A stretch of 62,273 nt of DNA from Octopus bimaculoides (lineage: Eukaryota). Shown here one piece after another: positions 1,861 to 60,911 of this stretch. The notes beneath the pieces are model-generated. The model searched no databases and was not told the DNA's origin. It saw nothing but the letters and a program-made list of their open reading frames with translations. How positions within the stretch are numbered: position 1 is the stretch's first letter; each line of letters begins with the position of its first letter. The stretch is from NCBI RefSeq assembly GCF_001194135.2, contig NC_068981.1:187027109-187089381 (forward strand), read 5' to 3'. A program made the position numbers and the translations under genes.

Positions 1861-1983
1861 TTTTCGTTTTTCTTCCATCTCTCTTCTCTTTTTACGTTCT
1901 GCTTCTTCTTCCTTCTCTAACTCTCTTCGCCTCTGTTCTCGTTCTAATTGCCGTTGTCGCCGTTCTCTTTCTCGATCTGCAAT
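1861..1983 (-). CDS. ACIN1: ACIN1 exon [41 protein letters not shown] (R/E-rich tail; 3' boundary uncertain)
   Basis: Acceptor ttgttgcttag|ATT. Putative weak donor AAA|gtaaag; otherwise the frame reads on as VKYSISI to TAA at 1839-1837. Confidence 0.85.
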
Positions 1984-4900
1984 CTAAGCAACAATTGGTC
2001 ACCTTTAGTTTCATGGAAACATTAACAAAAGAGACACCATATATTAACCAATCAAGTTCCTCGGTCACCCTGACTCCAGTTCCTACAGGATATTCGTGAA
2101 CAGTAACATTCTCGGTCACATAATTTCATTGGACAGAGGTTATGATAATCTCAAACCACCACACCCTTCATCATCAACATCCATCTTCCATGCGTGCATG
2201 AGTAGGATGGTTAACAGGAGCTGGCCAAGTAGAAAAACTACCCTAGGCTACTGTGCCTGTTTTGGCAGGGATTTTTCCAGCTGGATGCCCTTCTTAACAC
2301 CAGCAGAACCCTGAAACCATGTAACATGAAACAAATAATTCTAACCATGATAAATCTTGTAGTCTTGTGATGTCATCAATATCGTTAATTCCAGCATATT
2401 TCATCACAAGGTAAATAGAAATTCTTCATCATCATCATCATCATTTAATGTCTGTTTTCCCAGCTGGCATGGACTGGACAGTTTGGCAGGAGCTGGTAAG
2501 GCTCGGAGCCACACTAAGCATGCAGTACAGTTTGTAAAAGTGGTTGGTGTTAGGAAGGGCATCCAGCTGTAGAAATCATGCCAAAACAGACAACTGGAGC
2601 CTGGAGCAGCTCCCCAGCTTGCCAGCTCCTGTCAAACCGTCCAACCCATGCCAGCATAGGAAACAAACACTGAATGAAGATGACAATGATGATGATGAAA
2701 TGCTAATTTTATAGCATGTGCTGCATAAATTGCATAAGTTTTGTATGTGATACGAAATAAATGATCTTCATTTATGGAAACACAAACAACATTGATTTGG
2801 CTTTCCTACAATTAAAATAATTATATATTTCATCGGCACAGGCACGTGGGTGTGGCTAAAATGCTTGTTTTACAGTCACATGGCTTCAGGTTCAATTCAA
2901 CTGGACAAATGCCTTCCACTATAATCCCAGGTTGACCAATGCCTTATGAGCAAATCTGAATAACAAAAACTGTGTGGAAGCCTGTCATGTGTGTGTGTGT
3001 GTGGTTGTGTTTGGCCTCAAACCCCACCTTGACAACTAGCGTCAGTTTGTTCACATCCCCATTAAATTAGCAGTTCAGCAAAGGGGACTGATGGAATAAA
3101 TGTGTTAAAAAAAAAATGTACTGGAGTAAATTTGTTCAACTAAACCCTTCAAGCATGGCCGCAGTCCAATAACTGAAACTGGAGATAAAGAGAGACAAGA
3201 ATATTCTTACCTGACTTTCTGTTAGTGGCAACCAGTATATACACGGAACAGCTTTGGTTTTCCTAAATAAATCATCTAGTAATTTGGCAGGGGCTTCTTC
3301 TTCTATTACTTTCTTTTCTGCAAAACAATAAAACAAAAAAAATAAAATAACTACAGAAATCTATCTAGAGAATGTCATCTCAAACTTTTGGAAAACCAGG
3401 AAGACTGGGACACAGCAGTGAAAGCCAATCTCAAAATATCAAGGCTTATGAAGGAGATGATAGAAGAAGGAGATATGTGGCGCATTGCTGTACTCAAGAG
3501 GAGCCACCCCACCACAAGAGAACTGACAGTCTAAAACCACCTTGGTAATGCCAGTTCATAAAGGGCTCTGCCCTGTCAACTTTCACCTCCCACCCACATT
3601 TCGCTCCCTAACACCTAAAAAGCACTGGTGATGGTGACAGGGCCATGTAAAGAGCACTGGTGATGGGGCCACGGAAAGAGCACTGGTGATGGGGCCACGT
3701 AAAGAGCACTGGTGATGGTGCCACGTAAAGAACACTGGTGGTGGGGGCCACGTAAAAAGCAACTGGTGATGGTGACGGGGCCATGTAAAGAGCACTGGTG
3801 ATGGTGCCACGTAAAGAGCACTGGTGATGGTGCCATGTAAAGAGCACTGGTGATGGGGCCACGTAAAAAGCACTGGTGATGGGGCCACATAAAGAGCAAT
3901 GGTGATGGTTCCACATAAAGAGCAATGGTGATGGGGCCACGTAAAGAGCAATGGTGATAGTGTAAAAAGCACCCAGTACACACTGTAAAATGGCTGGCAG
4001 ATAAAGGGCATTCAGTTGTAGAAATGAAGCCAAAACAGACTATGAAACCTGGAGCAGCTCTTGGCCTTGCCAGCTCCTGTCTAACCCATACCAGCATGGA
4101 AAACAGACAATAAATGATGATGAAATATAGCCTGAAAAAATAAATCACTAATCACATGGGAACCAAACACCACACCTGTACATGTAGTGAATGGTTAAGA
4201 AGTTCGCTTTGCAATCACAAGCTCCTAGGTTCAATCTCACTCTATGGCATCTTGGGCAAATGACTTTTACTCTTGCCTCGAGTCAACCCAAGCCTTTTTG
4301 AGTGAAATTGGTAGGAAACCGTGTAGAAGCTTGTCAGAGGGATGCTTACTGCAATCCAAAGGCACAGTATTGTCACAATAGTGTCACACTACACAACTGT
4401 AGTGGAGGATTACTTTAATGGTAAACATGTCTGTGGAATACTCAACCACTTACATGCTAACTCAACAAACAGGTAATACAGTTGTTCAACCAAATGACCC
4501 AACTGATGGAGATCTTTTTATTAATACAGGAACAGAATACCTATTCACAAGAGACTCTAAAGCAAAACAACTGACATGAAGAATCCAGACGTCATTCCAG
4601 TATAAGGAGCTAAACTATGAAATGGCCTGCCATATATATTTCATTTTGGTCCATACTTCAAACCACAATGTCTAATGTTATTAAAAATATATTCTGAAAG
4701 TATAACTACAAAGGAAGACCTGTATATCTAACTGAAACCCTTATGACTCCTGGAGGTCCGTATAAAATTTTAGGGAGTCCATGCAAGAAAATAACAAATT
4801 GGGAGTCCACATAGTATTTGAGGGATCCAGACATATTTATTACAAGAAACAACTAGGTTTCTTTCTCTAATGCTTTACAACATGTTCCTGGCTGCTAAAA

Positions 4901-7900
4901 CATGTTTTCTCAGAGAGTGCTGTTGCTAACTTACACAAGTGAACATGTGAAAAACAAAATAAAACTTAAGACTTCTGAAAGAATTATCTGTAAAAGTATT
5001 ATTTAAACATCAAATGGCTATGGGGATTCACCAATGTAAAACTGGAATCCAAGGGATCCATAGATAAAAAATGGTTGAGAACCCCTGACTTAAGTATAAT
5101 TACAAGATGCAAAATGACTGAAAGATATCAGAAGCTCTGTGTGTGTGTAACTATAATATTAACCCTTTCATTACTGTATTTATTTTGAGATGCTCTGTGT
5201 TTCTTTTAATTACTTTTAATATAACAAAGAATTTAGTAAAATAACTTAGTTATCATTAAGCTAGTGTTAGGAACATAAATTGTGACTACGGTTTGGTGGA
5301 AGATTTTAATTCAAAACTTATGAAAACAAGACATTTATACTATAGGGCCAAAGTTGGTTTCAGCCAGGTTAGTAACGAAAGGGTTAAATCAGTTACCTTT
5401 CTTTTCTCTTTTTTCTCCACTTAGTGCCCGTTTTTTCCTTTCTCTGGACCTTGACCGAGACTGTGAACAAGACGCTGACCTCGACCGCCGTCTCATCTTA
5501 CCACGATCCCATTCTCTCACTTTTTTAATATCTTCTTTCTTCTTCATTTCTCGCACTGATTTCTCAGCCGATTTCACTGTTTTAACACTGACATCTTGCT
5601 GGATTTCTCGGATAATGTCCTGAGGGCCTTCCTCTTTGGAACGATAGTAACTCACCTGAAATGCAAGACAAGAAGTTAGAACTATGCATAACATATACAC
5701 AAGTAAATCATATCCCAATCAAAACTAATAAGATTCAATAAAATGCTTCAAATAATTATTTTAATTAACCCATTTGATACTTTTTAAATGGTTTAAATTT
5801 AAATCTTCCATCAGAATTTCATGTTAATCTATATTCCAAACAAATGCTAGCTTAATCCTTTAGCATTTAAATCGCCATATCCAGTTAAAATATTCTGCTC
5901 ATTTTATCTTAAACTGACCATATCTGGCCTATCACACTTACCCGAAAATATCGTTCTGCTTATGCCAGTGCCACATGACTGGCACCCATGCTGGTGGCAC
6001 ATAAGAAGCACCATTCGAGTGTGACTAATGCCAGTGCTACCCGACTGGCACCTGTTCCGATGGCATTTAAAAAGTACCATTCAAGTGTGGCCAATACCAG
6101 TGACACCTGACTGGCACCTGTGCTGGTGGCACGTAAAAAGTACCATTGAAGCATGGCCAATGCCAGTGCCGTCTGACTGGCACCCATGCCGATGGCACAT
6201 AAGAAGCACCATTCGAGTGTGACTAATGCCAGTTCTGCCTGACTGGCACCTGTGCCGGTGGTACATAAAAAGCACCATCCAAGCATGGTCAATGCCAGTG
6301 CTGCCTGACTGTCTGCCATGCCAGTGGCACGTAGAAAGCACCCACTAGACTCTCGGAGTGGTTGGCATTAGGAGGGACATCCAGCTATAGAAACATTGCC
6401 AGATCAGATTGGAGCCTGGGGCAGCCTCCTGGCTTGCCAGTCCTCTGTCAAACTGTCCAACCCATGCCAACATGGAAAGCAGACATTAAACGACGATGAT
6501 GATAATGATGATCACTGAAATCTCAGATCAATGCGAATAAATAAGCATTACGTTTGACAAAGAAATCTGAATGCTAAAGTAATGATAATGACAATGATAT
6601 TTTACAAAATTCTTCATTATTTTCAAAATTAATTGAAACAGAAAGGCATTACTCTTCAACAGAAATATGATAACAAAAGAATTTAAAACTACTTCTAAAA
6701 AGATTTTAAAAAACGTTGCAAAACTATCAAAATTCAGTTTACCTCATCATCTGTTGCATATTCTACTCGCAAAATTTTTGGATTAGAAGATGGCCATTTG
6801 GTTCCATGTAGAGCTTTTCTGGTTAGGATAGCTTGTTCTTCTGTTTCATACTAAATAAAGAAATAATTCAGAATATATTAGAAAAGAAATGAGAACATTT
6901 TTCTCGAGTCATTTTAGAAGTATGCTATTTATATTTAGTTAACATTTCCTAATTTTACAAGTAGATGTATATTTACTATTTGCAGGTAAAAATATAGCAT
7001 CTATTCAAAATAAAATTCATGATTTTACTTCATTTTTCAAATTTTAAAACATCAAACAACCTGAAAAGTCATTATAAATTATAAGACTAAAATAAGCTCA
7101 ATTTATTACAATATATGCAATAGTTTCTAATACAGGCACAAGGCCAGAAATTCGTCAGGAGTAGATCAATTTAACTGACCTTCATATGTGATTGGTACAT
7201 TATTTTATCAAATCCAAAAGATTAATGACAGATAAAAGTTCATCTTCACAGAATTTGAATTCAGAAGACAAAGAATCTTGACTATAAACCACAATTTGTT
7301 AAACACTAATAATTCTCAGTCTACTACCATATAATAATTTTGTTTTTTCTCTAATTTAATTCCAAGGCCAATTTCCAAAGGAGATAATTAGTTGATACTA
7401 AAACCTCAATACTTGACAGAAGTTTTATTTCCTTGACCCTGGAGGAATGAATGGCAATGTTGGCTTCATTCATGGGATTTGAACTGAAGGTCTTGTTTTG
7501 CAAGTTACTTGTTAACCACTGTTGCCAGTGTCACGTCAAAAAGCACCCTATACACTCTGTAAAATAGTTGACATTAGAAAGAGCATCCACCTGTAGAAAC
7601 CATGCTTAAGCAGATACTGGAGCCCAACAACATCGTCAGCTCACCATTGCCCCTATCAAACCATCCAACCATGCCAACATGAAAAACAGATGTTAAATGA
7701 TGATGATGGTGATTGGTAGGGGATCAGTCAATAAAATCGACCCCAGTACTTGACTGGTATATGTAAATAATAATAATAAAAAAACCTACCTTGGCAAAAC
7801 AATGGGATTTAATCTTGTCTATCCAGAAACCATTTTCCACAACTGCTCCAGTTCGTTTTAAAAGTTCCTTTAACTGACCAATTGTAAAAGGACGAACTAA

Positions 7901-10900
7901 ATTTCGGACATGCACTATCTTACTAACTGGATTATGAGCAGGTGATGGAGATCTCCGTGCAGCCATTGGTTCCTCGGGTTCAGTAATTGACAGCTGATGG
8001 CTGACCCTTCGAACAGTTAATGGGGACGTAAAAGTTTTGTTGGTCACTACCACAGCGGGGGCTTGTTGGTTAACAACTATTGGAGTGACAGGTTCTGAAA
8101 ACATACAAGTGTTAAGTTATTAGTACAGTGAGTCATGTTATGTGCAGTATTGTGTATTTAGTGCATACTACTAATATGTTGCAACATTATTCTACACCAG
8201 CAGTTTATAGAATGTGGCTTTGTTTATAGAATGACAGTTTAGAAACTTTGGCTTTGAATATTAAGAAATTCCTGTGTCTCAGCCTTTCCATAATGCAAAA
8301 ATAATTTATGTAAATTTTGCTATTTAAATATTAATGCAAGTTTACAGATGTTTCTAAACTAGATACAGAAGAAGAACTTCACTTAGTCTAACCCTTTCGT
8401 TACCAAACTGGCTGAAACCAACTCTGGCTCTATAGTATAAATGTCTTGTTTTCAGAAGTTTTGAATTAAAATCTTCCACCAAACCTTAGTCACAATATAT
8501 ATTCCTAACACTAGTTTAATGATAACTAAGATATTTTACTAAATTCTTTGTTACATTTAAAGTAATTGGAAGAAACACAGAGCATCTCAAAATAAATACA
8601 GTAACAAAAATGTTAAAGAACACAATACTCTTTGCACAACACAAATATTCAATAATGTTAAGACAAGAGTTTTAATAGCAAATAAGAATTATATAAGTCT
8701 TTGGTAAACAGTATAAATACTCAAACTGCAAATTTAGATTACAAACTTGTATTTATATTCAAGTATTTAACTTTTATTTTATTTATGAATAACTAATTTA
8801 ACCCTTCAACATTCAGATTACTGTCAAATGTAAGGATTATTTATCATTTTATTTTGTATTAAACATAGATTATCTTGTAGCTTTGAGTTTTTGAGGATGC
8901 GATTGTTAATTTTTAGAATAACATTGTAGAGTTAGTGCAAGAGGTTAGATCTAGCCAGTTGAAGCATGATACATGTAGATTATTTGGGTGGATACAACCA
9001 GTTTAAATGCTAAGGGGTTAATGGAAGTAAATAATAAACATCTGAAACCTTAGTCTACCTTAAAGGAGCACTAATCCAAAGAGAGGATATTCCCACTTAT
9101 TTTTTGCTAGTTTAAGTACAAGGTTAGTAATTTTTTGATGGGGGTGGTCCATCAACACCAGCAATAGACTGGTACTTTATTTTATCAACTCCAGAGAAAC
9201 AGAAGACAAATTTGACCCCAGCAGAATTTAAACTCAGAACATGAAGAATTGCTAATCCACTGCCGTAAGCACAGCTAATTAATAAAACTTGAATGTGGCA
9301 GAAATGTTAGCATGCTGGGCAAAATGCTTAGTGGTATTTTGTCTGCCGCTACATTCTGAGTTCAAATTCTGCCGAGGTTGACTTTGCCTTTCATCCTTTC
9401 AAGGTTGATAAATTAAGTAGCAGTTGCATACTTGGGTCAGTCTAATTGACTGGGACCCTCCCCAAAAATTTCGAGTTTTGTGCCTAGAGTAGAAAAGAAA
9501 ACTTGAATGTCTACTAAATATTTGCTTTAATATTACCTCTCTCAATTGGTGCAGCAGTCGCAGCAATGGGCACTGGTGCTGCAGCTGCAACTTCAGAAGA
9601 AACCTCCAAATCAGCATCAGTTAAGACTTCTCGTGCAGTAGTGACCAATTCAACTTCCTCCTCTTCCTCTTTCATCTAATCAACAACAAAAAAAGAAAAT
9701 CACTGAAGCTTGCACCAATTAAATTCCTGCATGTCAACATGCTAATGTAATACAATTAATCATGCTGGTACCACGTCAAAAGTACCGATGCTGGTACCAC
9801 ATAAAATGTATCCAGTACACTCTGTAAAGTAGCTGGCATCAGGAAAGGCAACTGACCAAAGAAATCATGCCAGAAAGGAGAATGGAACCTGGTGCAATCC
9901 CCAGCCTTACCAGCTCCTGTCATACAATCCAACTTATACCAGTATGGGAAACAGACATTAAATGATGATGATGCAGATCAGTTCTTGCAACTTCTTTCTA
10001 CTGGACTGTATGTCATATGAAATGTGGAGAATTCTGGAAAGTACCCCACCATTAAAAACAATTCAGTTCTCCTGTCTCAAGTGCACAAGCACAGAGCTGA
10101 GTATACACAGTTACTGAGCAATGATGGCCTAAACATTATTGTGAAAATTTTGCAAAAGACACAAAATACTTGCTGACCTCGTGGGTGCTGGTGCCTTGAT
10201 GGCCCTGCAGGTACTGGTTCCACATAAAAACCATCTGTGCTAGCGCCACATTAAAAGCACACATGCTGGCACCACATATAAGAGCACCTCAGAATACTCT
10301 ATGAAGTGGCTGGCATTAAGAAGGGCATCCAGCTGTAGAAACCATGCCAAAACAGACAACTGGAGCTTGGTGCAGCTCCCCAGCTCCTGTAAAACTGTCC
10401 AACCCCATGTCAGCATGGACATTAAATGATGAGGACATGATATATTAAACAACTAATATACAAAATAATACAATTGGTCCATAAAATAATACATACCTGT
10501 ACTGTTCTTCGGAACTTCACTTCCACTTTTTCTTCTTCGTGGTCAGAGAACGAACATTCATCGTGGCTGAGATCTAATATAGCCTCTTTTATAGAACTTG
10601 GTTTTATGTCAGGAATTAAACCCTAAAATAATCAATGTAAGTCAATATGATAAAATTCACAAAGATTTTTTTCTTTGCTCAATATTTAGCAAAACCATAG
10701 ATATTTAAGTTACCTTTAAGGAATCTGTAGAAATATCTATTGTCGTTGACTTGGTGGGTTTAGCACTGGTTCCCCATTTACGTTTACGTGGTACAGCAGA
10801 GGGAGCCGGTGCTGTAGCCTTCCCATCACATTTATCACTCGATTCTTCATTTTGCAACTTAACTACAACGCAAAATAAACAGAAAAATTAAAAACAACAG

Positions 10901-19900: not shown

Positions 19901-21863
19901 GAGACGACACAGACCTGCAAAGAAAAAGATTTAAAAGGAGCTTAATTATCAGTCATACAGAAAATCAAAATGTGTTTAGTATACACTATACAATAAAATA
20001 AAAACCCAAACGAAGCTAATCAATTTTAGACCATTTTGCAAAAAAAAATTTTAAAAAAACACTTTACATTATTTTCACATTTTTAATTAGTAGTATTAAA
20101 AATAAAAATCACTTGCTCAAACTAGTTAGTAAAACAAACATCCTAGAAAAATATTTGTATAAATAGTGAAATATTCTAATCTTCAAACTCAGATTTTGCT
20201 CCCAAAAAATTATATCAGTTCTTACTTAATCTGTGTAATTCTTGAAAGTATGAACAACTAAAGAGAACTTCCCTTGAGTAAACTTTTTTGAAAAAATGTT
20301 GACCACAACATCTATGAACCTGAAATATAAAACCCTTTTGGAATGTTTTTTCAAGTGGGCATGTGCGAACCACATATAACCCAGTTTTTAGAAAAGGTAC
20401 ACCATGTACCTGCTGTCATAGAAGGCAAATGAAAGTGTTAGTATCTGGAAGGGTCTCTGGTTGTAAAAAGACACTGCCCCAGAAAGATCCATCTAACCCA
20501 TGTCAGAATGGGGAAGTAAAAACAATGATTATATAATGTCAGAAATTCAACAGAGCCATTTATAAGGGCAATGAGATTATTTTATGAACTTAATTCTCGA
20601 AAGTTTATCTTCTACTATTGGAATATTTTCAGCTTCCAAATTCTAATGGCAGAATATAGCAAGCATGAAGATGCTAGATGTTATTTGGTGGTAATATAAT
20701 CCTGAAAACTGGTGGCTTCACTAACTAGAAGCTAAATCTACTGTAATATTCAATATTACAGGAGATAGTTTACTGCAATTAGCGCTTCATCTTCTTTTGA
20801 ACTGAACCACACCAACTGAAAATACTATGACAGACTTTATTTTCTGACAACTTTGCCTTTTGTAGCTTGTTTGCAACTTTCCACAAAACTACAAAGCTTT
20901 TGTTTTCTCTAACCAGGAAATAAATTTCTAACAAAGTACCAATGGAAGCTGTAATTCTCACACCATTTCTCCATTAGTATTAGTAAACATTATTGAAACA
21001 GCTGGTCTGGAGAACAAGCTACAAACTTAGTCATCTGGAGCCCATCTTCTATTTTATAACACTCGCTAAAGAAAGACTTCAGTCCAGCACTTGAAGTTAA
21101 TGAACTACAAACTGGTTATGCAGTATTTCAACCAATTACAATCATGAACAGTTTTTCTCCATGACACGTCTATATGGTAATTAAGATTGGTGGAATGCAA
21201 TGCCAAGCTAAGGGCTCTCAACTCTTTAATGGAGCACACAGATGCCATGATGACAATTTGGACTTGGTGGAACCCATCCCTCTCCAGGTATGATCACAAC
21301 TGGTTTCTTCCAAAAAGAGAATAATCAACTCCAGTACTTGTCTAGTACTTTATTTTATCAACCCTGAAAAGACAAAAGGCAAAGCTGACCTTGGTAGGAT
21401 TTGAACTCACGAGCACAGAGAGCTGGAGAAATTACCACAGAGCATTCTATCCAATGCTCTAACAACTCTGCTAGTTGGCCATCTTAAAGACAATAACAGT
21501 GATAGAATACATGCCTTCAGCCAGTAAGCAGCAATCTCACTATCACTGCCTATTTAGGCTACGTAACACTACATAATATATGCTGTCAACTAGTAAGCTG
21601 ACAAGTATATATTATGTATTGTTGTGTAATCTTAACAGGCAGGGATATTGTAGTATTCCTACTCTGCAGTATCCCTATCAATCAAGACTACATTGCAATG
21701 ACATAAACAAACTAAGAAACTTCCTGAAATATGGCAAAAGTATATAAATAAAGCTTAATCATGACTTTTAACTATAAGAGACCACTGTAAGTGGTAATAG
21801 GCAGGGATAAATACATCTTCCATCAAATGCCAAAAAATGTTAGTACTAAATAGTTTTTTGTAA

Positions 21864-26087: not shown

Positions 26088-26184
26088 NNNNNNNNNNNNN
26101 NNNNNNNNNNNNNNNNNNNNNNNNNNNNNNNNNNNNNNNNNNNNNNNNNNNNNNNNNNNNTATATATATATATACACACACACA

Positions 26185-26246
<62 letters not shown>

Positions 26247-28917
26247 TTACATTACATACGTACATACATATCAAATTGAGAAATTCCATGTAACATCATT
26301 CCACAGCATTTCATATTAGGAGTGTCTTCTCTACCTGAAGACTGTTTGCAGGAAGAAACTCAGTAAAATGTACATTACATTGAATGTCTTAAACTGATAT
26401 ATACATAAATATAAACACACATACACTTTTTTTACCATTTAAAGCTACTACATGCCGGTTAGTGTTAATGTATGCCATCATAAGCAAGTGTGAGTGTGTG
26501 TTTATGTTATATTTTAAATACATGACCAATCTAAACATAAGAACCTACAAGACTGAAATAATTCCAAATCCAACATAAACCATCCACCTATAATTGCTCA
26601 AAGGTGACAAAGGCTTTAAGCAAGTCACAGTATGATTAGAAAGGACATTATCATAAAGTACAGAAAAATACACAAAATGTTCAAAATTTGGTATTTTGGC
26701 TAACATACACTATGTTCAGAGATTTGGAGTAATCCTCAATTCAATAGGTAGGATGTAACATGACTGGGCTATTTGATGAAACACAGCATGCCATCGATAC
26801 AATACAATTCAAACTACAAAACAAAATATTTAGAACTTAACTTGCAACATTTAATACTTGATAGAAATAAACTGTGCAAAGAAACTCAACAAAAAGAAAA
26901 ATATTTACAGAATTCCTCAGAGCTACAAAATTATCAAGATACACAAACCTAAGGAATACATCAATTCTATGACAGAAATAAACGATATAGTAAAATAAAA
27001 TATAGAGAATTCAAATCCCAAAACATAAATAGTTCAAGACTGAAACAATTAGAGGATAGACCAAGGTAGACAACTCTGTACAATCTAATCACAATAGTAA
27101 CTTTTCTCCTTTCCCTACACAAGAAAACTTAGTTCTCAAGCCAGAATTAGAACGGTTAAATTTATGAAAATTTCCAACAATCATTGTCAACTAAATATTA
27201 CCATATTTAATATTGAAGATATTGATTCTGAATAGAGCAAGTATTTATTGAAAACAATGGCACAACAGGAAATAATCTACCTAATGTATTAAACCACCTA
27301 CACAAGATTTAAAATGGAAGCTATTAATGAATTTAGTTCAAACCATATATTAAACTATCTAAACTTATTAAGAAGACAAAACAAAATATAAAAGGTGAAA
27401 TATATATTTTACAAACATAGAGTCCAATAATAACTTGGGGAGAAATATACCCTGCAGTTTCAAATATTTCAATAGATTAATTCAATTATATCATAACTTT
27501 TATTAAGAAAACTAAATTTTATAAAAAGGAAAAATATGTGAAGACAAATTTAAAGGATTTTTGATGCTAAATTAAAAGGTGCTTTTTAGTGTCAATATTA
27601 AATTAGCCCAATTTCTAAGACACAAGGACTGTTTAACTACTCTAATGTGAATATCACATTTAAAGATAATTTAAAAAGCGAAAAGAATATACATAACAAC
27701 ATGGAAAATAGAAGTAACTTATGAAAACTATATGCATTGAACTATGACAGGCTGAAACATTGAAATTACAAATTAAAATTAAAAAGGGAGAAAAAGAAAA
27801 GAATTTCCTAAGCAACACTTACTTTAGTACAGCCACTTGTTATACTGGCTCCAAGATCAGTTCGGTCCAAATCGCCAACAAAGTGTCAGGGAATTGACAG
27901 TGACTGTGTGTACACAAAGCCAATCTTTTGACCAATAGCACTAATTAGTTGCTAGCAGTCACAGCAAGTGTCATTTGGTTTTGCTTTCACTTTTTTTTTT
28001 TTGCTTTCTTTTGGTTTTTTTTTTTTTTTNNNNNNNNNNTTTTTTTTTTTTTTTCTCTTTTAACATAAAAATAACTGTTGAATTCTAGAGTTTAAGCTTG
28101 TGGGTATATAGTATTCAATATAAAATATCATAGAAAAACCAACTCAAATTTAGTACAAGTATATATGAAAGATCACAGAACATGGAATTGCCTATATTTC
28201 ACTAATACTGACCAACTAAGTTGCAGAAATAATTTCAGCATAATTAGCCTTAATTAATAAATGGTAGCTAACGCCTTACTTACAATCAAAACTATTGTTA
28301 GTAAACGAATGACAGTAAAAATCACAAAAGTCTACCTTAGCAAATTGAAAAAGATGTTTGTGTGTCCATGTATGTTACGTAGAAAAGACAAAAGATATCT
28401 GGTGTACTCAATAAACATTTAAATTCACAATTCTATGAACATCAAATTTTATTTCTAGAAACATCATAATCATTTTCAGCAACCATTTTTTTTTTTTTTT
28501 TCATTCACACATTCTCAAAACTACAAATTCATTTCCTTTTATATCTCAATCTCTCTTTATTTGTATTTCATCTCTCAGAAATGGGGGGATGGGGGTTAAT
28601 ATTTAATCTTACATTACAAATAAATATCTCCATGTGGGTTTCATCAATGGTTCATTTGGTGTGTGGCAAGATATTTGAAACAAGTTTATTCATGTTTATT
28701 CATTTTCAACAGTTCACTCACCAAACAGAGCTACAAATAGCTCTTGTTTTATCAGCGGTTCTCAACCGGGATCCACAAGATTTTGTTGTTAAAATTTATG
28801 TGCAATAAATTGCTTATATTTCTACAATACACAAAATATTAAAAAAATTTTTTTTTTATACAACTCTAAATATTTAATTATAAAAATTTATTTATATATA
28901 TATATGTATATATATAT

Positions 28918-30459: not shown

Positions 30460-33400
30460 NNNNNNNNNNNNNNNNNNNNNNNNNNNNNNNNNNNNNNNNN
30501 NNNNNNNNNACACACATACACACACAAATAATGTAGTTAAAAAAAAAAAATCTACTTTTACATACATACACAACTACAAGAATGGCATTTGAAAGTGAAC
30601 TGTGAAATGGTGGCATGTTGAAAAATAAAATCTCCACATGTTAGTGAAATTTAAAAAAAAAAAAAATACTAAACTACATTTGCCCTCATTTTAAAACTTT
30701 TTCATAATTCAGGAAAAAGGTTACAAGATAACTAAGAAAAAACTTAGTACCGTTTCATATTATTAATAAATAAATAAAAATAAATAAATAAAAAGTTACT
30801 GAAGGCATAAAATTTACCTTCAATATTACATAGAATGGAAGGTTTTGATCATGCAAGCTGAACACAGAACTTAACCTTAAACAACGAAGTGATTTTCACA
30901 TTCTTTTCTACACAAATGCAAAAAAGCTTAAGTTTATTAATGATATAGCACTGAATAATAATGATAAATGAAAAAATATATGGTTTTTTACCAGCTAATT
31001 GAATAACCCATCCCTGATTTGGCTGTGATAGCATTTTGAAGTTTAGAAAAAAAAAATCCCCAAAAAAAAGCACTGGTAAAGAACTCTACAGTGTATGACA
31101 AAAGTAGTTAAAAATGATGTGAAAAGACAGACGATCTAGTGAAAATGATTGAATTTGAACAATGGATGGTGAGGTGAGGGTAAATATCAACACCCATATT
31201 AACAGAAAATTACAACAAATGAATGAGTGGATAATAATCTACCAAGATGCTTGTAATTGTTAATTTAGGTTATTGTGTTCTATCTAGAATAGATATCCAG
31301 TTTGTCAGGAGACATGCCTGACACTCACATATACTAGTCTGAGAGAGAGAGAAAAAAACTTCCATGTAAATGGCTGTTCATTATTTGGAATTTTTAAGTT
31401 GGGGGATATGAAAAGTGTAAACACTATACAGAGAAACTTTAGGGGGATGTATATTAAAAAAAAAACAACTTTTAACTTAAAATCTCAAGTTCTCTTTTTT
31501 TCTGATTTTTTCAAGATACAATTTGACAGCTTTGTTCCCAAATCATTATCTTATTTATATAAAGGTTTAAAAAAGAAACTACTTGTTTAAAATGCTTTAA
31601 TTTCATTGAAAATAAAATGCTACATAGAACTGACATGTTTTGTGAAAAGGCTCATTGTAAAAAGAGGAACAAATCACACTAAGTGAATTAATAAGGAAAT
31701 TGTTATAAACTGATAGAAGTGTGTTCAACAGTAAATAATGCTGTTTTTTTTTTCTTCTTTAAATGCAGTTTTCATTATAAAATTACAACAGGTCATAAAA
31801 GAAGCATGCATACAATGTCAATGAGTAACAATTGAACTCATCTCACATAACAAAAAAAAATATTAATACATTTGCTGGGGAAGAGGAGGAATTATAAATT
31901 ATTTCATCTAATTATTAGTGAATGTTAGACAAAGCAAAGTTATTCTAATTTGGGACAATTACTTCTTTAATGAAATTAAAAAGATTTTCAGAAAAAAAAA
32001 AAATTCTTTTCGTTTTGTATAAAAAGTCAAAAGGAACAATTAAAATATTGAAATTAAGATTCAACAAAATATAGCCAAAAATTTCCATTGAAAATCATTT
32101 TAACATTAATATATGAAAGAAGAACAGAGATTAACAAAATCAACTCGTTAGAGAGTGGTGTGTTATTTACTACAGGCAAATAATTACATTACAATCTTTT
32201 TTTAATTTTTCAAGTGAACCAAATATAATTAATTTGTTTGTTACTTAAAATTGTTTGTTAACAGAAGTGTTATGTTGCCTCCATCATATAAATATAAACA
32301 GTCATTATGTATGTACACACACAGTGTATGTATAAGCACAGCTAGACTAGAAAAGTAAAGTTCGACAAAGAAGAATTTGTTCAAAATAAAGAAAAAAATT
32401 GCTTTGACACCAATTACCTCCATAAAATACAAAGTAATATTTTTAATGCTATTATTACTAAAAGTGAATTTATTCTATGTACCACAAGTGATTGTAGATC
32501 AATAGTATTGAGTACAATTCAATACAAAGAGAGAAAAGGCACAAGATAAATCCCATCGAAATGGAAAAGGGATTTTTATTATTAACAAGTTAAAATTGAA
32601 AATCTTACATTATATATTTTGTTACTGCTCATTTTGTAAACATTAAAATTGAAACAGCAACCCAATGAGTTATTTAACCATCAGATCAATTGATAGGAAT
32701 AACTATTTAATCCAGTTAATTAAGACAAATTAAGCACTAAAATGTTCATAAATTAAATTAGCTAAGATAATGACTAAAATATATACTATATGTCTTAATG
32801 AGAAACAACTTTAAAATTTTTTAAATTATAAAACTAGTAATTTTAATGGCATTTTAACAGCTGGTTAATTAATGTAGGAACAATACTATTTAAAAATCTC
32901 AATATTTGGCTTTCTTCCCTTCCCCCCACCCAATTTGTTTATTCTTTTAAAAATTAAAATGATAAATATATAAACACAGCATCTAATTTGAAGTGACTGT
33001 ATTTACATCTTAGAATTCGCTAAACTATATTTGGTTGTCAATAAGACAATCTCCCATAATTGTTTATCACTCATACTTTCCAGCTTTCAAGATTTACTGG
33101 TTAAATAACTGGGTTACTTTACCAGTGTTCCCTATATATGTGATGTGTGTGTGTGTGTGTGTATGTGTGTGTGTGTGTGTGTACAGGTATAGGTGTGTAG
33201 CCAAATGGTTAGTATCGATGTCATCATCATAAAGATGACAGTTCAACTACTAGACCAGGCGGCGTATTGTGTCCTTGAGCAAGGCACTTCATTTCACACT
33301 GCTCCAGTTTAAATCAGCTGAAAGTATCAGCCAAATACTGGTGCAACCCTCTCTCTCCCCTTCCAGTTATCACATCCTCCATGTTTTGCTGGATCAAAAG

Positions 33401-36400
33401 TGGGAGGGCCCAGAAGGTGTCTATGTCTGCTCACAACTACTTAGGCACCTAAAGCAATTAGCAAAAGCAAAGTACATACTACCAAGTCACACTCATTTAT
33501 GAGTGACAGTTTTGCTGCTGGTTTAGATGTGTGGAAGTTTATACATGTGTGTGTTTATATGAGTACATTGATATGTGTATATTTATGTGTATATGTGTAT
33601 ACACACATCCATCCATACATACACACATGCATGTGTTTGTGAAGGAAGAAAATAGATTTCAATTCCTAAAGGGACAAAATTATTGAATTTTTAATTTTTA
33701 TATGATTGGCTGAATGTAACTGAATCAGTCACTACTATAATACACTGAAAAATTCGTTTTTGCATTATTATATTTGGTAATTGAATGCTTATAATTCAGG
33801 CATTCGTTTTAGGAAGGAGGGGAAAAAATCAATTAGCATTTATAGAAGAAATGTTTTTCTTTCAAAAACAAATTCAAGTCACATCTCATTAGAGTTATTC
33901 TTTCTATTCCTTGAATAGCAATATATAATTTTGAATTACAAGAAAATATGTTAACCCAACAAAGAACATTAGGCTGCAATGAATAGTTAATCCAATACTG
34001 ATAATATATTTTTTAAAAATCAAGTTTTTAAAACCAACAGTAAATGCTGAATAACATACAATACTATCAGAATTAAAATGGCAGTTTACTCTTGGAAAAT
34101 CTAAGATTCCAGGTATTTTACCTAACAAGTTTATAAATAGCCTCCAAAGTGGTCTAACCATTCTTTGCAAATTTATAAATATGTAATAATTTTGTACACA
34201 CTAAAATATAAACAGTTGAGCTCACTGGTTCATAGCTTTTAAAACACAAAATAAGCCTGATTCAGAAATTCACTTTCTGATCATGGAGTTTCATGTTCAG
34301 TGAGGCACCTTCGGTAAGTGACTCCTACGAGAGTCCAGAGCCAACCAAAGCCACAAGGCTGTAAAACTGGTAGAATGGAAACCCAAAGAAGCCTGTTCTT
34401 ATATGTGTATACATGTCTGTGTACATTTGCATGTGTGAGTTAGTATATATTTCGTTTGTCTTCACGTGAGTTCACTGGATGTAAACAATGGCCTTGCTAA
34501 TGGTGTTTGCTAGAAATCCACCACAAAAGCAGGTCTGGGCTCGAGATATAGGATGTTAGTAAACAAAAAGCTCATTCCAGTTCTCCATGTAAACATGTTC
34601 ATGTTGTTTGTTGATAGATTGAGAGATAATTAACTCGTTTGGCAAAAGATGGGGTTAGTGACAGGAAGAGACACCTACCCACCCCCCTCCACTATACTTT
34701 TTGTGCGACCCATGCAAGTGTGGAGAAGTAGACGTTGAAACAATCATCATCATTTAACGTCCGTTGTCCATGCTGGCATGGGTTGGATGGCTTGACCAGG
34801 CTGGCACGCTGGGAGGCTGCACCAGACTCCAGTCTAATTTGACATGGTTTTCTACAGCTGGATGCCCTTCCTAATGCCAACTACTCTGAGAGTGTAATGG
34901 GTGCTTTTACATGCCACCGGCACAGGTGCCATTCGCATGATACTAGAGTGCTTTTATGTGATGCTGGCACGAGCCCGTGATGATGAAAACAAGTTGTATC
35001 TAACCCAACTAATGAAACTAAGTTTACTCTGATAAAACAACTTCCAGAATAAACTCAGCAATACTTTGCATTCAATTTTACTTTATGAATATATGTCTAT
35101 GAATCTATTCCTTTTAATTGCAAAACTTCAGTGGTTGAAATTCTTATGCAATTAACTGAATACACAAAGTAATGATCAGTCATACAATACTGTAGTTACA
35201 TTTACACATGCATCATTATCTGCTTTCCATGCTGGCCTAGGTCGGACAGTTTGACAGGATTCAATAAGTCAGAGGGCCATGTTGTGCTCCAATGTCTTAG
35301 TTTTGGCATGGTTTCTACAGCTGGATGCTCTTCCTAATAACACTTTACAGAGTACACTGGGAGCTTTTTACATGGAACCAGCATTTTTAGCAGGATTGCC
35401 TTGTAACTTGCAAGACTGAAGTGTCCCCACAACAAAGGAGAATAAGAGAGTGATGATTTAAGATGAGGTAGGGATTATATAAAACAAAAATAAAACATTA
35501 CTCAAAAGTATGTTATATTTTTTATCTTTTTTTTTAATGTGAAAAATCCCAGTTTAAAGCTGCACGAAACAAAATCTGTTTTATCTGTTAGAAAATTAAC
35601 ACAGACCAACTTCTTGTTCTTCAAATAATACATATGATCCATCTCCCAATCATTAATTCGAGTATCCATTTCCTTGTACAGGTCTTAACAAGTGACAAGA
35701 CTTGTAGTTTGCACAAGAATGACACTTCAAATGTTATTGGTATCCAGTTGATAAATTCTGTGATCTATGACTATACAATTTCTAACTGCTGCCAATTCAT
35801 GCAATTCCACAATGGCATAAAACTGTTAAAATTTTCAGCTGTTTTCTTCTAAGAATCTTCTCATAACCGACAGAACAAGAGATGGGTAATACTATGTCAT
35901 CAACATCATCATATCATTCATGACTGAGAAGTAACCAGTTCTTCACCTGCTAGAGTATTGCGATACTCTAGATCATTATCTTGACCTACATATACCTCAA
36001 TCTGTTCTTGTCACCATCATGTGGAGGGAAAGGATGCCGCATCTACAGCTTTAAAACCAGCTGTAGATGTAATGGATCTACAGCTGTAAAACCAGCTTTT
36101 TGGGACAAAGAAAAAAAAATGTTCAGTAATCTTTTGATTAGATGAATCACATCCAATCATGTGATGCTTTTGGTGAGCTATTTATGGATGAATTATTGAT
36201 GTGGTGTTTGATGGAAGCGACAGTTTAAATTAACATTTACAACAGCTGAGTAGGTACATTGTAAGTATATGTATCAACAAGCAATACAACTTGTCTATTC
36301 TTCAGGGTCATCACTCTCAAATTCTCAGTCATGCTTTATGTCTCCAGTCAATTTTGCTAGTTATATAAGATCGCTAAACATAATTCACAGGATGTGAATT

Positions 36401-48400: not shown

Positions 48401-48885
48401 CAGACATTTATCTTTCGAGTTAACAGCAATAACTTAATGACAAATACAAAATTAAAAATACAATTAACACAAACTCTGTATTATCTGACATATTAAGAAG
48501 GAACGTTCAGATGGTCTGGATCAAGTAAGAGTTTGTTTAATCACTTTCTAAAGGTATAATAAATCTAATTTTTCAGCTTTATTAGATCGAAGAAAAAGGG
48601 GGAAAAATGCATCCGGTTTTGTTTTTTTTAAGAATGAAATTTATGAAATGCAAAAAATTATATATATATATAATATATAACGTACTGTTAATTGGGGATA
48701 GAATTGCGTCCATTCGATNNNNNNNNNNNNNNNNNNNNNNNNNNNNNNNNNNNNNNNNNNNNNNNNNNNNNNNNNNNNNNNNNNNNNNNNNNNNNNNNNN
48801 NNNNNNNNNNNNNNNNNNNNNNNNNNNNNNNNNNNNNNNNNNNNNNNNNNNNNNNNNNNNNNNNNNNNNNNNNNNNNNNNNNNNN

Positions 48886-56101: not shown

Positions 56102-56681
56102 CAGTGGTTCCCAAACTGTGGTCTGCAAAGGTAGTACTGGGAGTCCATGAACTAAATTCAAAATTTCATATATATATATATCATCATCATCATCGTATAA
56201 TGTCCGCTTTCCATGCTAGCATGGGTTGGACGATTTGACTGAGGACTGGTGAACCAGATGGCTGCACCAGGCTCCAATCTGATCTGGCAGAGTTTCTACA
56301 GCTGGATGCCCTTCCTAATGCCAACCACTCCGAGAGTTTCGGGCCAGTCAGGCGGTACTGACAACGGCCATGGTCAAATGGTGTTTTTTACGTGTCACCT
56401 GCACAGGAGCCAGTCCAGCAGCACTGGCAACGACCTCACTCGAATGTTTTTTCACGTGCCACCAGCACAAGTGCCAGTAAGGCAACACTGGTAACGATCA
56501 CGCTCAGATGGTGCTTTTTACATGCCACCTGCATGGAAGCCAGACAACTGCTCTGGCAATGATCACGCTCGGACGGTGCTGTTAGCGTTCCACTGGCATG
56601 GGTACCAGTCATTGAATTTGGTTCAATTTCGATAGGTGTTCATAAGAATACTCATTTAACTAAAAGGGTCGGGAACTACTG
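56102..56681. mobile_element. hAT-like MITE with a nested young (CAT)n-tailed retroposon (~56178-56620, -)
   Basis: cagtggttcccaaac ... gtcgggaactactg TIRs; TSD gtctatat/gtgtatat (7 of 8). Confidence 0.8.
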
Positions 56682-56724: not shown

Positions 56725-57998
56725 CAGTGCTTCTCAACTGAGGTCCATGTGACTCCTGAGGATCCATGTAAGATTCTTAGGGATCCACATAAACAAAGTA
56801 GTAAATTGGATCCATAGTATTATTTTGAATGCTAGAAGAGATGTGTCCCACCCACTCCACCCTAAGAAACCGAACAACTCCTCCTCTTCTAAACTGCATT
56901 TTCCTCTTCATAAACCATGATTGTTTTCCAATCCCCTTTCTTGCCCTCACTGCCCTGCTCAATGTATCGCTGCTTCCTTCCAACCCCCATCACTCACACC
57001 TTATTTTTCTACCCAGGTTCTATGCTCAGATCCTTGTTACTTGTGAGTATACCCTAACACAACATCATCTCTCTCTTCTGCTCTCTCTTACATCTTTGTT
57101 GTTTCTTACTTTCTCTCCTTCTTTCCTCTTGTTTTTCCTCTGACTAAGTCACCAAGTGTCTCCTTAACATTAGCACACTTCTTTCTGGCTGCTTTCTTGT
57201 ACCTCTCTCACTAAGTAACCATGTACCTCCTCTATAGCAAGACACCTATTTCTGCCTCCCTATTTCCCTCTTACATTCTAACCTTTCATCATCTTGATAC
57301 TGGCTCATCTCCTCTAATGCACCCTCTGTTGTGGCAAAACACCTACTTCTGTCTCTCTGTCTCTTTGATACACTCTAGCATCTCATCCTCTGACACAAGT
57401 TTCCCTCCTCAAATGCCCTGCCCCTCTCATAATTCCTTGTCTTGCAAGTTACTTGGTTACCCTGCCAGTGCTGGTGCCATGTTAAAAGCATCCAGTCCAC
57501 ACTGTAACATGGTTGGCATTTGGAAGGGTATCCAGCTGTAAAAATCATGCCAGAACTAACCTCACCTGTGCTGGTGCCACATAGAAAGTATCGAGTCCAC
57601 TCTGCTGGGTGGTTGGTGTTAGAGGAAGGGCATCCAACTGTAAAATCCCTGCCAAAACAAACACAGTAGTCTAGGGTAGTTTTTCAATGTGGCCAGCTCG
57701 TGTCAACCATCCTACCCACGCATGCATAGAAGATGGACATTAGATGACGATGATGATGATGATGATGAAAAAGCTTTGCTATAGATGTATTATTTATTGC
57801 AAGAAACAGTTAGGTTTCTCAAACAATTTTACATATTTCAACCTACACAAGTGGATGTGTGATGAACAAAATAGGTATTTTGAAAGAAGTATCTATAAAA
57901 CTAGCTTTTATACATCAAATGGCTATTGGCCCCACCAGAATAAAATAATCATCAAAGGGGTCCATAGATAAAAGAAAAAAAATGGTTCAGAATCACTG
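56725..57998. mobile_element. hAT-like MITE expanded by nested insertions, including an (ATG)n-tailed retroposon (~57450-57770, +)
   Basis: cagtgcttctcaac ... ggttcagaatcactg ends, with family motifs ggatccat/ggggtccatagataaa near both ends. Confidence 0.62.
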
Positions 57999-59629
57999 TT
58001 TTAAAGCATTTAGCAAACTTGAATATCTTTCCATTGACAGTTTGCATTCAGTTCTAAAGTACCTTCTGAGATCTGTAAAATTATACGGCTTACATAAAGA
58101 CCATACTTGCCAATCAAACTATGACAAATTCTTGCATTCTTTGCTACTTCCAAACAAATATTTAGGAAAATCTACACTCTGAAATGAAACTAACACTATT
58201 TTAAATAGTAAAAAAAGTTGAATACAATTTGAGAGGACAGACACGCTAACGCTAATGTCATATAGTTCTGTTACTTACCATTGTCAGTGCAGTTTAATTC
58301 AACTGAACAGAATTATTTTATTTTATGTTGGGTGGGGGGGGGGACAATAGCAGAGAAATAGAAGGGATTAAGATGTGGTCTTAGCTGTTAATTAGTTAAA
58401 ATACAGTTAAATAACCTTTAGATTAAAGGTTGAAATCCTGATACAAGTATTTCTTTATAAACTTAGTTGGAAAACAATGTACACCATAATCCATGTTTTT
58501 GTTTATTTGTTGGTTGTGTTTTGCTCAAACAGAAGAGATATACACTCTGAGACATGGACAGAGAGAAAGTTTCCATGGATTAAAGATTGGTCTTAGCGTA
58601 AAGTAATAGCATATAAAAAAAAAATAAAACTCTCTATTGTGATTGTTGTTCAAGTGAAGGAAATCGTTTAATGTTTACTTTAGAATTTGAAAAAGAGCAT
58701 AATCTTTCGTTTTATGAAGCAGAAAATGAAAGTACTAAACTCAGCTGAGATCAGCGTTTGGCAACACTCACTCACAATTCAGCAATAAAATGAAATGTGA
58801 AAAATCTTTTTCTTTCAAACTGACTGCAGGCATCATTCTCATAAACAAAATGCATTAGAGAATGTAATTTAGTTTTACTTTAAGATAAAAACAACATCAT
58901 ATACAAGCATTAGATATTAGTATCCAGTATGTTCATTTTTCCTTCTGGTTTCATTTACAAAATAAATCTTACAGACTTTACATACACACATTAATCAGAT
59001 CTTCCAGATTCTCTTTATTGCTCTAACACACACCTTCGTTTATGTGTGTTTTCTAAAACAGGCTTTCAATATCAGCAAAAATAATACTTTCACTTTCATT
59101 TTTACTATTGAGATTGCAGCAAATGACAATCTTTGCAGAGTTCAGTAGTTTCTCTTTCTAGTTCATAAAACGAAAGATCTCTGAAAAGAGAGATAGAGCA
59201 TGGACGGCAAATAGCAAGATGTATGGATCGGGTTAGTTTTGATGAGGGAAAGCAAATTCCAATGCAAAACAAACAAACAAAAAAATCTAAATTGGAAAGG
59301 ATATATGCGAGACATCAACTACAAAACAAAAATGTATCCATAAGAACAGTAGAAGGAAAATATAAAGAAAATGTTTGAATATGTTTAAAGCTAAGGCTTA
59401 AAAATATCGAGAATTTACTGCTAGAGTAGCAGAAATAAATTATAGGATCTAAGGAAGGTGATGATGATAATGATGAGATGAAAGAGAAGAAATAGCAGCA
59501 GCACAAGAGTGTAAATGCTTATGTGGTTAACTTCTACCTTTTCTTCGTTTCAGTCATTAGACTGCGGCCATACTGGAGCATCGCCTTGAAGACTGTTTAG
59601 TCAAACAAATCAACCCCAGCACTTCCTCA

Positions 59630-60875: not shown

Positions 60876-60911
<36 letters not shown>

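Follow-up and report, generated by a model that had tools for sequence, protein, structure and literature searches.

In other animals the EJC is deposited about 24 nt upstream of the 3′ end of an exon. Human recursive-splicing (RS) exons, which are mostly constitutive, are repressed by the EJC core together with RNPS1 and PNN (PMC6224609), and the relevant complex is PSAP (PMC9178013). Knockdown of ACIN1 had a ‘very weak’ effect on human RS-exons (PMC6224609) and none on the RS-exon of KPNA1 or on other EJC-dependent events (PMC4268817). Recursive splicing requires prior splicing of the upstream intron; most RS-exons do not respond to EJC knockdown, repression is incomplete at some of them, and those that are EJC-sensitive combine a strong rebuilt site with a weak donor of their own and strong flanking acceptors (PMC6224609). 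Fly regenerated sites have been termed ‘functional, but evolutionarily fortuitous’ (Joseph and Lai 2021, PMC8184009). EJC repression of rebuilt sites in human and fly, which a first-pass annotation of the octopus locus described here had invoked, is documented (PMC6224609; PMC8184009). A search of the literature for recursive splicing or EJC control of splicing in cephalopods returned no description.

The locus lies in a window of 62,273 nt from Octopus bimaculoides (GCF_001194135.2, NC_068981.1:187,027,109-187,089,381, forward strand), by which we mean the whole stretch of DNA that was analysed and within which all positions below are counted. Its minus-strand gene is the orthologue of ACIN1 (Acinus), an identification already made in the first-pass annotation and upheld here by the domains and structure of the product. 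An RRM precedes the RNPS1-SAP18 binding (RSB) motif, giving the Acinus-type domain order; the Pfam RSB_motif match is above its curated cut-off (E=3.1e-25), the RRM_1 match (E=0.0013, 19.0 bits) falls slightly under its own of 20.7, and chain B of the ASAP structure, PDB 4A8X, matches with E=5e-12. The best homologue matches carry the name ACIN1, and Octopus vulgaris CAI9716624.1 is nearly identical to the spliced product. Fifteen exons were modelled in the window and yield an open CDS of 2499 nt. A SAP domain exon was not found within the window. The Sepia-type orthologue of Acanthosepion pharaonis (P0122) has its SAP upstream of the part aligning to 54247, so the octopus SAP exon is probably located past the window's end. 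Homologues were collected with a 730-aa concatenated query, a 301-aa query having listed no cephalopods, and the listing seems restricted to matches whose length, relative to the query, is between ~0.6 and 1.75. None of the six possible genomic ORF calls over exon 13 was present in the protein collection on exact look-up.

Four exons at the 3′ end of the model, all on the minus strand, are central here. Exon 12 (6743..6850) encodes the second half of the RRM and ends in GAT GAT GAG/gtaaac (the slash marks the splice junction), exon 13 (5397..5655) is 259 nt long with start phase 0 and end phase 1, exon 14 (3211..3317) encodes the structurally defined RSB motif, and exon 15 (1861..1983) has the donor AAA/gtaaag, the final coding exon or exons lying beyond the window. 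Exon 13 had been recognised correctly at the outset, although the span then assigned to it, 5397-5660, takes in five nucleotides of the acceptor. Its product runs through REWDRGK into an RS-rich linker, a stretch that takes in the N-terminal portion of the Pfam RSB_motif match, and GAA/AAG repeats are abundant in its sequence. The upstream intron (5656..6742, minus strand) is 1087 nt long and contains a 66-bp tandem array (5962-6342) adjoining a copy of an interspersed repeat (6378-6512); the downstream intron (3318..5396, minus strand), of 2079 nt, contains a 26-bp tandem array (3632-3958) that adjoins another copy of the same repeat (4009-4123), and its acceptor, ttttattttttttgttttattgttttgcag/A, is preceded by a long pyrimidine tract.

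The acceptor of exon 13 reads cttgcatttcag/GTGAGT (tttcag/GTGAGT), so that 3′ and 5′ splice-site motifs are juxtaposed as CAG/GTGAGT at 5650..5658 on the minus strand, with the exon starting at 5655. Because the first two codons, for Val-Ser, are GTG AGT, the exon opens with a consensus donor hexamer, and once it is ligated to the GATGAG end of exon 12 the junction becomes GAG/GTGAGT, as had been read originally and as the sequence confirms. A candidate branch site, TTCTAAC (5675..5681, minus strand), has its branch A 20 nt ahead of the AG at the acceptor and is followed by a pyrimidine-rich tract; together these would be predicted to form a strong 3′ splice site. The exon's boundaries were set by homology, and the spliced peptide from RVEYATDDE onward, whose last residue closes exon 12, finds exact matches in an Octopus vulgaris protein and in an octopus mRNA. 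Another AG, 5 nt downstream (gtgag/TT), was considered as the acceptor and discarded, as homology is lost when it is used. Exon 13 is included in an octopus mRNA contig (L003) and in two proteins (P0240, from O. vulgaris, and P0241); every mRNA or protein model recovered contains it, and the orthologous exon is likewise present in a Sepia mRNA (L004).

The strength of the rebuilt donor was assessed with two simple proxy scores, a generic PWM and predicted U1 duplex energy, rather than with MaxEntScan. GAG/GTGAGT reaches 11.3 bits and a duplex energy of -10.5 kcal/mol. The exon's own donor, AAG/gtaact (5391..5399, minus strand), which has no G at +5, reaches 8.65 bits and -6.5 kcal/mol. Compared with the gene's 15 real donors in the window the rebuilt site comes first by PWM and second of 16 by U1 energy, and it is the top donor-like 9-mer across the entire spliced CDS. 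The initial claims that it outscores the exon's own donor and that no other junction rebuilds a comparable site both hold, the latter for all 14 junctions in the window; ‘perfect’, the word first used for it, overstates a strong but only near-perfect site that agrees with the consensus at 8 of 9 positions and has G at -3. The sole other exon in the window to start with GT is exon 4, where TTC/GTCTGT scores -2.7 bits, and exon 13 itself holds two additional donor-like sites, both octopus-specific. RNA structure masking the rebuilt site was sought, and nothing exceeded the shuffled controls (z = -0.30). With two copies of YAGGTRAGT in the window and 1.98 expected, the motif shows no enrichment. 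A rough codon-frequency estimate gives ~1% per gene as the chance of a site this strong falling right at the start of an exon; this rarity by composition, in a gene of the relevant pathway, is an observation that speaks against fortuity.

Published work defines a putative annotated RS-exon as a normally included exon whose junction with the preceding exon recreates a 5′ splice site scoring beyond a cut-off that 90% of canonical donors attain. By our PWM proxy the rebuilt donor stands above all 15 real donors, and exon 13 is by that sequence definition a putative ‘annotated RS-exon’, a looser class that accounts for 3.6% of human exons and is found in 21.7% of human genes (PMC6224609).

Were exon 13 skipped, the reading would run GAT GAG/AAA AGA AAG TAA in a shifted frame, with the TAA at 3306..3308 (minus strand), 95 nt upstream of the 3211 junction and with at least two more junctions downstream of that one (1861 and beyond). 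The loss of 259 nt, the frameshift and the position of the stop had all been called in the first-pass annotation, and each checks out against the sequence. The same is true of the proposal that the product would be an NMD substrate, in so far as the predicted stop satisfies the usual rule by lying more than ~50 nt upstream of a junction, as is also typical of AS-NMD. Skipping had been said to delete the RSB motif. The motif would indeed be lost, but through the frameshift: as defined by 4A8X chain B it maps to exon 14 and the beginning of exon 15, not to exon 13, although the Pfam RSB_motif match, which is longer, starts within exon 13.

Comparison across animals separates the intron from the motif. 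The phase-0 intron position is ancient, being shared by octopus, Sepia, snail, oyster and pufferfish. As the first six exon bases, two octopuses have GTGAGT, Sepia has GTGAAC, the snail Batillaria ATGGAG, the oyster Saccostrea CTGGAA and the pufferfish Tetraodon CTGGAC. GTGAAC was seen in Sepia esculenta mRNA, in Sepia officinalis genomic DNA (retrieved via cluster member P0244) and in five further contigs, and the Sepia exon is likewise 259 nt long. The residue that follows the junction was compared in 215 homologues: Leu leads with 166, and Val (20), Met (13), Ile (5) and Phe (5) come after it. Within this set Val-Ser is restricted to Octopus. Agreement of the two octopuses on GTGAGT is uninformative, since their synonymous divergence at 4-fold sites is only 0.22. 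Conservation of GTGAGT across cephalopods and other molluscs, which the first-pass annotation had put forward as a check, largely fails, and the nucleotide conservation across related lineages expected of an AS-NMD cassette is absent. Two apparent Val starts elsewhere proved to be artefacts of proteins that read into the intron, namely the annotated Batillaria protein (EE-VVHSL..., intron gtagtt) and a Logan protein (P0077, EE-VSQCEF..., intron gtaagt). The Sepia version of the junction, GAG/GTGAAC, scores 6.15 bits and -7.0 kcal/mol, much like some real donors of the gene such as GAG/gtaaac, and a weaker rebuilt site may for this reason predate octopods.

Taking these data together, we favor, with a probability of about 0.72, the reading that exon 13 is a normally included coding exon whose rebuilt donor is a lineage-specific by-product of coding drift, kept silent by the EJC. 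The drift would have left Val-Asn (GTGAAC) in cuttlefish, Val-Ser (GTGAGT) in octopus and Leu, Met, Ile or Phe codons at the same place in other animals, and the rebuilt donor is probably fortuitous and of a known kind. By analogy with human and fly, an EJC on exon 12, ~24 nt upstream of its 3′ end, would silence the rebuilt site, and would do so through RNPS1 and Pinin, not Acinus. Without this repression, splicing would run from the rebuilt site to the 3318/3317 acceptor, exon 13 would be lost and the frame shifted, the RSB motif would go untranslated and the mRNA would become a predicted NMD target. Silence of the site is itself suggested by a few assembled mRNAs. Some use of it is plausible, because the rebuilt site is unusually strong, the exon's own donor is weak and the acceptors on either side are strong, a combination characteristic of EJC-sensitive RS-exons (PMC6224609).

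A more ambitious proposal, made in the first-pass annotation, is that exon 13 has been selected as a sensor repressed by EJC/ASAP, such that when the activity of the RNPS1 complex falls the exon is skipped, the transcript is lost to NMD and ACIN1 output tracks its own complex. The relative strengths of the rebuilt site, own donor and flanking acceptors, the frameshift with its stop 95 nt before the next junction, and the standing of the rebuilt site as unique among 14 junctions and the best donor-like site in the CDS all fit such a device, and the mechanism is known in human and fly (PMC6224609, PMC8184009); a literature search found no paper describing ACIN1 feedback of this type. Against it, the motif is unconserved, being GTGAAC in Sepia and opening with ATG or CTG in other molluscs and a fish, and it is confined to Octopus, where the match between two species is uninformative. 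The human data also count against it: repression runs via PSAP (EJC core, RNPS1, PNN), and with ACIN1 knockdown very weak across RS-exons (PMC6224609) or null on KPNA1 (PMC4268817), ACIN1 would not be sensing ‘its own complex’. The loop would also have the wrong sign, in that less EJC activity would mean more skipping and hence less ACIN1, a positive feedback; the complex would promote inclusion, the opposite of AS-NMD autoregulation. Moreover, NMD itself requires the EJC, which would blunt the read-out at precisely those times when EJC activity is low. We regard this proposal as very improbable, and a regulatory reading of exon 13 is not supported. Much the same slim chance attaches to a variant in which A recently became G at +5 in octopods, with the Asn codon AAC giving way to the Ser codon AGT. 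The rebuilt site, weak until then, would have gained consensus strength and exon 13 would have become a genuine EJC-repressed RS-exon, whose skipping, via NMD or a truncated Acinus with RRM and no RSB motif, would couple ACIN1 dosage to EJC/RNPS1 activity. If true, this coupling would be a feed-forward or bistable link in the EJC network undescribed in any animal.

Two further explanations dispense with selection for a sensor and differ in how far the rebuilt site is open to the splicing machinery. EJC repression might be incomplete, with the site used at a low or tissue-specific level and the unproductive isoform lowering ACIN1 without dedicated feedback. Its strength relative to the exon's own donor favors such use; the recovered transcripts, on the other hand, all include exon 13, though NMD targets are rarely assembled, and the rebuilt motif is unconserved. 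We consider low-level use unlikely, if worth keeping in mind. At the other extreme, GTGAGT may never be available for recursive splicing, whether through prior removal of the downstream intron or through dominant exon definition by the exon's own donor and purine-rich enhancers, in which case the motif would have no consequence with or without the EJC. That recursive splicing needs the upstream intron spliced first, that most RS-exons are EJC-unresponsive (PMC6224609) and that exon 13 is rich in GAA/AAG would agree with this, but of the two flanking introns the upstream one is both the earlier transcribed and the shorter (1087 nt, the downstream one having 2079 nt), an arrangement that favors upstream-first removal, and we give this explanation little credence. 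Coding drift with EJC silencing remains the account we prefer.

Should the site be used and EJC-controlled, lophotrochozoans would gain in exon 13 their first documented recursive-splicing exon, and ACIN1 would be an EJC-associated factor whose own mRNA relies on EJC protection, with a bearing on the reach of the EJC safeguard outside deuterostomes and flies. At present the locus illustrates that rebuilt donors can arise as coding sequence drifts in the ordinary way, and that regulation should not be read from a suggestive host gene. A practical yield is a checked 15-exon model of octopus ACIN1 in the window together with a table of orthologous junctions from five lineages.

Among known systems, intronic ratchet points and cryptic RS-exons (Duff et al. 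2015; Sibley et al. 2015, as cited in PMC6224609 and PMC8184009) share the polypyrimidine-CAG/GTRAGT motif with exon 13, whose sequence cttgcatttCAG/GTGAGT at 5658..5650 conforms to (Y)nCAG/GTRAGT. Ratchet points, however, lie in very long introns (fly mean ~50 kb), are highly conserved and leave no residue in the mRNA (cited in PMC6224609, PMC8184009), whereas the octopus site opens an included 259-nt coding exon between introns of 1.1 and 2.1 kb and is not conserved, which sets exon 13 outside that class. AS-NMD autoregulation, as in SR-protein poison cassettes and RBM10, resembles the predicted skipping of exon 13 in that a gene encoding an RNA-processing factor acquires a premature stop by alternative splicing. 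There, however, the protein drives its own unproductive isoform, giving negative feedback, and high conservation of the elements is the rule (PMC5737846, PMC6547761), while in octopus the productive isoform is the one that ACIN1 or its complex would favor, and the element belongs to a single lineage. Closer are the regenerated junction sites of Drosophila, e.g., in CkIIbeta, where a donor-like site is likewise remade at an exon-exon junction, between short introns, with poor conservation and drifting encoded residues; those sites are mostly weak consensus matches validated with reporters (PMC8184009), and the octopus site is near-consensus and known from sequence. The nearest likeness is to mammalian annotated RS-exons such as that of KPNA1 (Blazquez et al. 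2018, PMC6224609), constitutive coding exons that begin at a strong acceptor, end in a weak donor of their own and, once joined to the preceding exon, recreate a strong 5′ splice site whose use would lead to their skipping. The sequence context of exon 13 would fit this, with its TTCTAAC candidate and pyrimidine tract, its own donor without +5G and its introns of 1087 nt upstream and 2079 nt downstream. It differs from the mammalian RS-exons (PMC6224609) in being recognised from its sequence, in belonging to a cephalopod and in residing in a gene that itself encodes a peripheral EJC factor.

One minus-strand gene spans nearly the whole window. Its spliced peptide matches the Pfam RSB_motif above the curated cut-off (E=3.1e-25) and RRM_1 just under that of its own family (19.0 bits; cut-off 20.7), its closest database relatives carry the name apoptotic chromatin condensation inducer or ACIN1, and chain B of 4A8X, the Acinus RSB peptide of the solved ASAP core structure, aligns with it (E=5e-12). 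Guided by P0240, a near-identical protein from Octopus vulgaris (CAI9716624.1), and by the cuttlefish ACIN1 P0122, 15 exons were placed on the minus strand, all with canonical AG/GT borders and together forming an open reading frame of 2499 nt: exons 1 (54247-54142), 2 (48140-47739), 3 (39298-39169), 4 (19914-19608), 5 (17820-17708), 6 (17202-17142), 7 (11164-11101), 8 (10862-10714), 9 (10622-10497), 10 (9675-9537), 11 (8094-7790), 12 (6850-6743), 13 (5655-5397), 14 (3317-3211) and 15 (1983-1861). The final coding exon or exons fall outside the window, and so, probably, does the exon for the SAP domain. Exon 2 encodes a long poly-Asn/Ser tract, absent in the cuttlefish orthologue and immediately past which the O. 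vulgaris model begins; it looks like a lineage-specific coding AAT-type microsatellite.

At least 14 copies of a SINE-like interspersed repeat (~100-160 bp, 72-85% identity) lie scattered over the two strands, among them those at 2425-2720, 4009-4123, 6378-6512, 9860-9971, 10326-10416, 34744-34864, 35224-35327, 56180-56308, 57631-57770, 59618-59754, 60755-61018 and 62103-62203. Several copies adjoin tandem arrays (26-bp at 3632-3958, 66-bp at 5962-6342), and the introns either side of exon 13 hold one copy each in the same orientation. The assembly here is of draft quality, with N runs at 26088-26160, 28030-28039, 30460-30509, 48719-48885, 60713-60722 and 61078-61315, several of which adjoin TA/CA microsatellites.

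The first-pass annotation had singled out the start of exon 13, and this sequence observation was confirmed. The acceptor, cttgcatttcag, is followed directly by GTGAGT; the exon is 259 nt long and ends in AAG/gtaact (slash, exon border), and exon 12 ends in GAT GAT GAG/gtaaac. The O. vulgaris protein and an octopus mRNA contig carry exactly the same junction peptide (...RVEYATDDE), and it is this junction homology that fixes the exon start; with an alternative acceptor AG 5 nt downstream the match with homologues breaks. Donors were scored by predicted U1 duplex energy and with a generic position weight matrix (PWM) serving as a proxy. On both measures the rebuilt GAG/GTGAGT beats the exon's own donor, as had been claimed (11.3 vs 8.65 bits; -10.5 vs -6.5 kcal/mol); set against the gene's 15 real donors it comes first on the PWM score and second in U1 energy, and it is the best donor-like 9-mer of the entire spliced CDS. 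Nor was a comparable site found at the other window junctions (14 in all): the only other GT-starting exon is the RS-rich exon 4 (cag/GTCTGT, start at 19909-19914, minus), whose rebuilt TTC/GTCTGT (-2.7 bits, -0.2 kcal/mol) is far from consensus and useless as a donor. No masking of the exon 13 site by RNA structure was found (z = -0.30). Exon 13 also contains internal donor-like sites at 5498 and 5517 (minus), GTG/GTAAGA (8.1 bits) and AAA/GTGAGA (7.4 bits); splicing from the former would drop 105 nt in frame, an RS-rich stretch.

Skipping of exon 13 would give GAT GAG/AAA AGA AAG TAA, the predicted frameshift with a stop 95 nt ahead of the following junction; downstream of that one come two or more further junctions. 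The RSB motif would indeed be lost, but by frameshift and not by the deletion originally proposed, as the structurally defined motif is encoded by exon 14 together with the first part of exon 15; the longer Pfam match starts within exon 13. The acceptor of exon 13 has a good candidate branch site (TTCTAAC) and a pyrimidine tract, its own donor is weak, the downstream acceptor is strong, and the upstream intron (1087 nt) is shorter than the downstream one (2079 nt). The best-supported reading is that exon 13 is constitutive, and that an EJC deposited on exon 12 would hold the rebuilt donor silent, a role carried over to a mollusc by analogy with human (PMC6224609) and fly (PMC8184009). Exon 13 is a putative annotated RS-exon, previously undescribed although of a known class; a literature search turned up no report of recursive splicing in a cephalopod.

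Oyster, snail, cuttlefish and pufferfish share the intron position, which is ancient (phase 0, following the D/E-E at the end of the RRM). Conservation of the GTGAGT motif, raised earlier as a check, did not hold. The exon starts GTGAGT in the window and in an octopus metatranscriptome contig (L003, SRR3401912; PMC11662614), GTGAAC in Sepia esculenta mRNA (L004) and in a Sepia officinalis genomic contig (L005) plus five more contigs, ATGGAG in the snail Batillaria, CTGGAA in the oyster Saccostrea and CTGGAC in the pufferfish Tetraodon. The Sepia exon is also 259 nt (own donor AAG/gttagg), and its rebuilt site, in which the +5 G and +6 T are missing, reaches 6.15 bits (U1 energy -7.0 kcal/mol), within the range of ACIN1's weakest real donors. 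Of 215 homologues, 166 have Leu after the junction, 20 Val, 13 Met and 5 each Ile and Phe; Val-Ser is confined to Octopus. Two apparent extra Val-start cases were rejected: the Batillaria attramentaria model P0020 (L002, JACVVK020000047.1, 4575-5085) reads past its donor GAG/gtagtt into the intron and continues out of frame through the exon that follows, losing the conserved REWDRGK (correct start cag/ATGGAG), and the Logan protein P0077 (L001, SRR26950824) is an intron-retaining transcript reading through GAG/gtaagt. Among the cephalopods covered (two sources from octopus, two or three from Sepia), the consensus donor at the exon 13 start is octopus-specific. Divergence at 4-fold sites is 72% between Octopus and Sepia and only 22% between the two octopuses, so that sharing of the synonymous GTG AGT positions by the latter is expected by chance (~0.6 for identity at both, by our estimate). 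The internal donor-like strings are likewise in both octopuses and not in Sepia, and drift in Lys/Arg/Ser/Glu-rich sequence therefore generates such strings.

Nor is YAGGTRAGT enriched, since the window has two copies, one at the exon 13 start and one in a real donor (47739), and 1.98 would be expected; its sole unusual feature here is its location exactly at an exon start. A rough codon-frequency estimate puts a strong donor there at ~0.1% per exon and ~1% for ACIN1. The empirical class is much commoner: at a threshold capturing 90% of real donors, rebuilt donors occur at 3.6% of human exons and in 21.7% of human genes, and 93.8% of the exons concerned are constitutive (PMC6224609). Given this, and that the site was noticed post hoc, its presence alone is no argument for function. 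The first-pass annotation had proposed that ACIN1 could sense its own complex, its level being coupled to EJC/ASAP activity through exon 13 skipping and NMD. We give this a small probability. The motif is not conserved; in human cells RNPS1 and PNN are the relevant peripheral factors and ACIN1 has a 'very weak' effect (PMC6224609); KPNA1, like other EJC-dependent events, did not respond to Acinus knockdown (PMC4268817); and reviews credit suppression of cryptic 5' sites to the EJC core plus PSAP (PMC9178013). The sign of the loop would also be unsuited to homeostasis, since a drop in the complex would increase skipping and so reduce ACIN1, and EJCs are themselves required for NMD of the skipped mRNA. 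The rebuilt donor is lineage-specific and most likely fortuitous.

In its sequence context exon 13 fits the profile reported for EJC-sensitive RS-exons (PMC6224609). In known AS-NMD autoregulation a protein drives its own unproductive isoform, and the proposed ACIN1 loop is of opposite sign. Regenerated junction sites in fly are described as 'functional, but evolutionarily fortuitous', and their wobble-type codon divergence is also the pattern at the start of exon 13 (PMC8184009).
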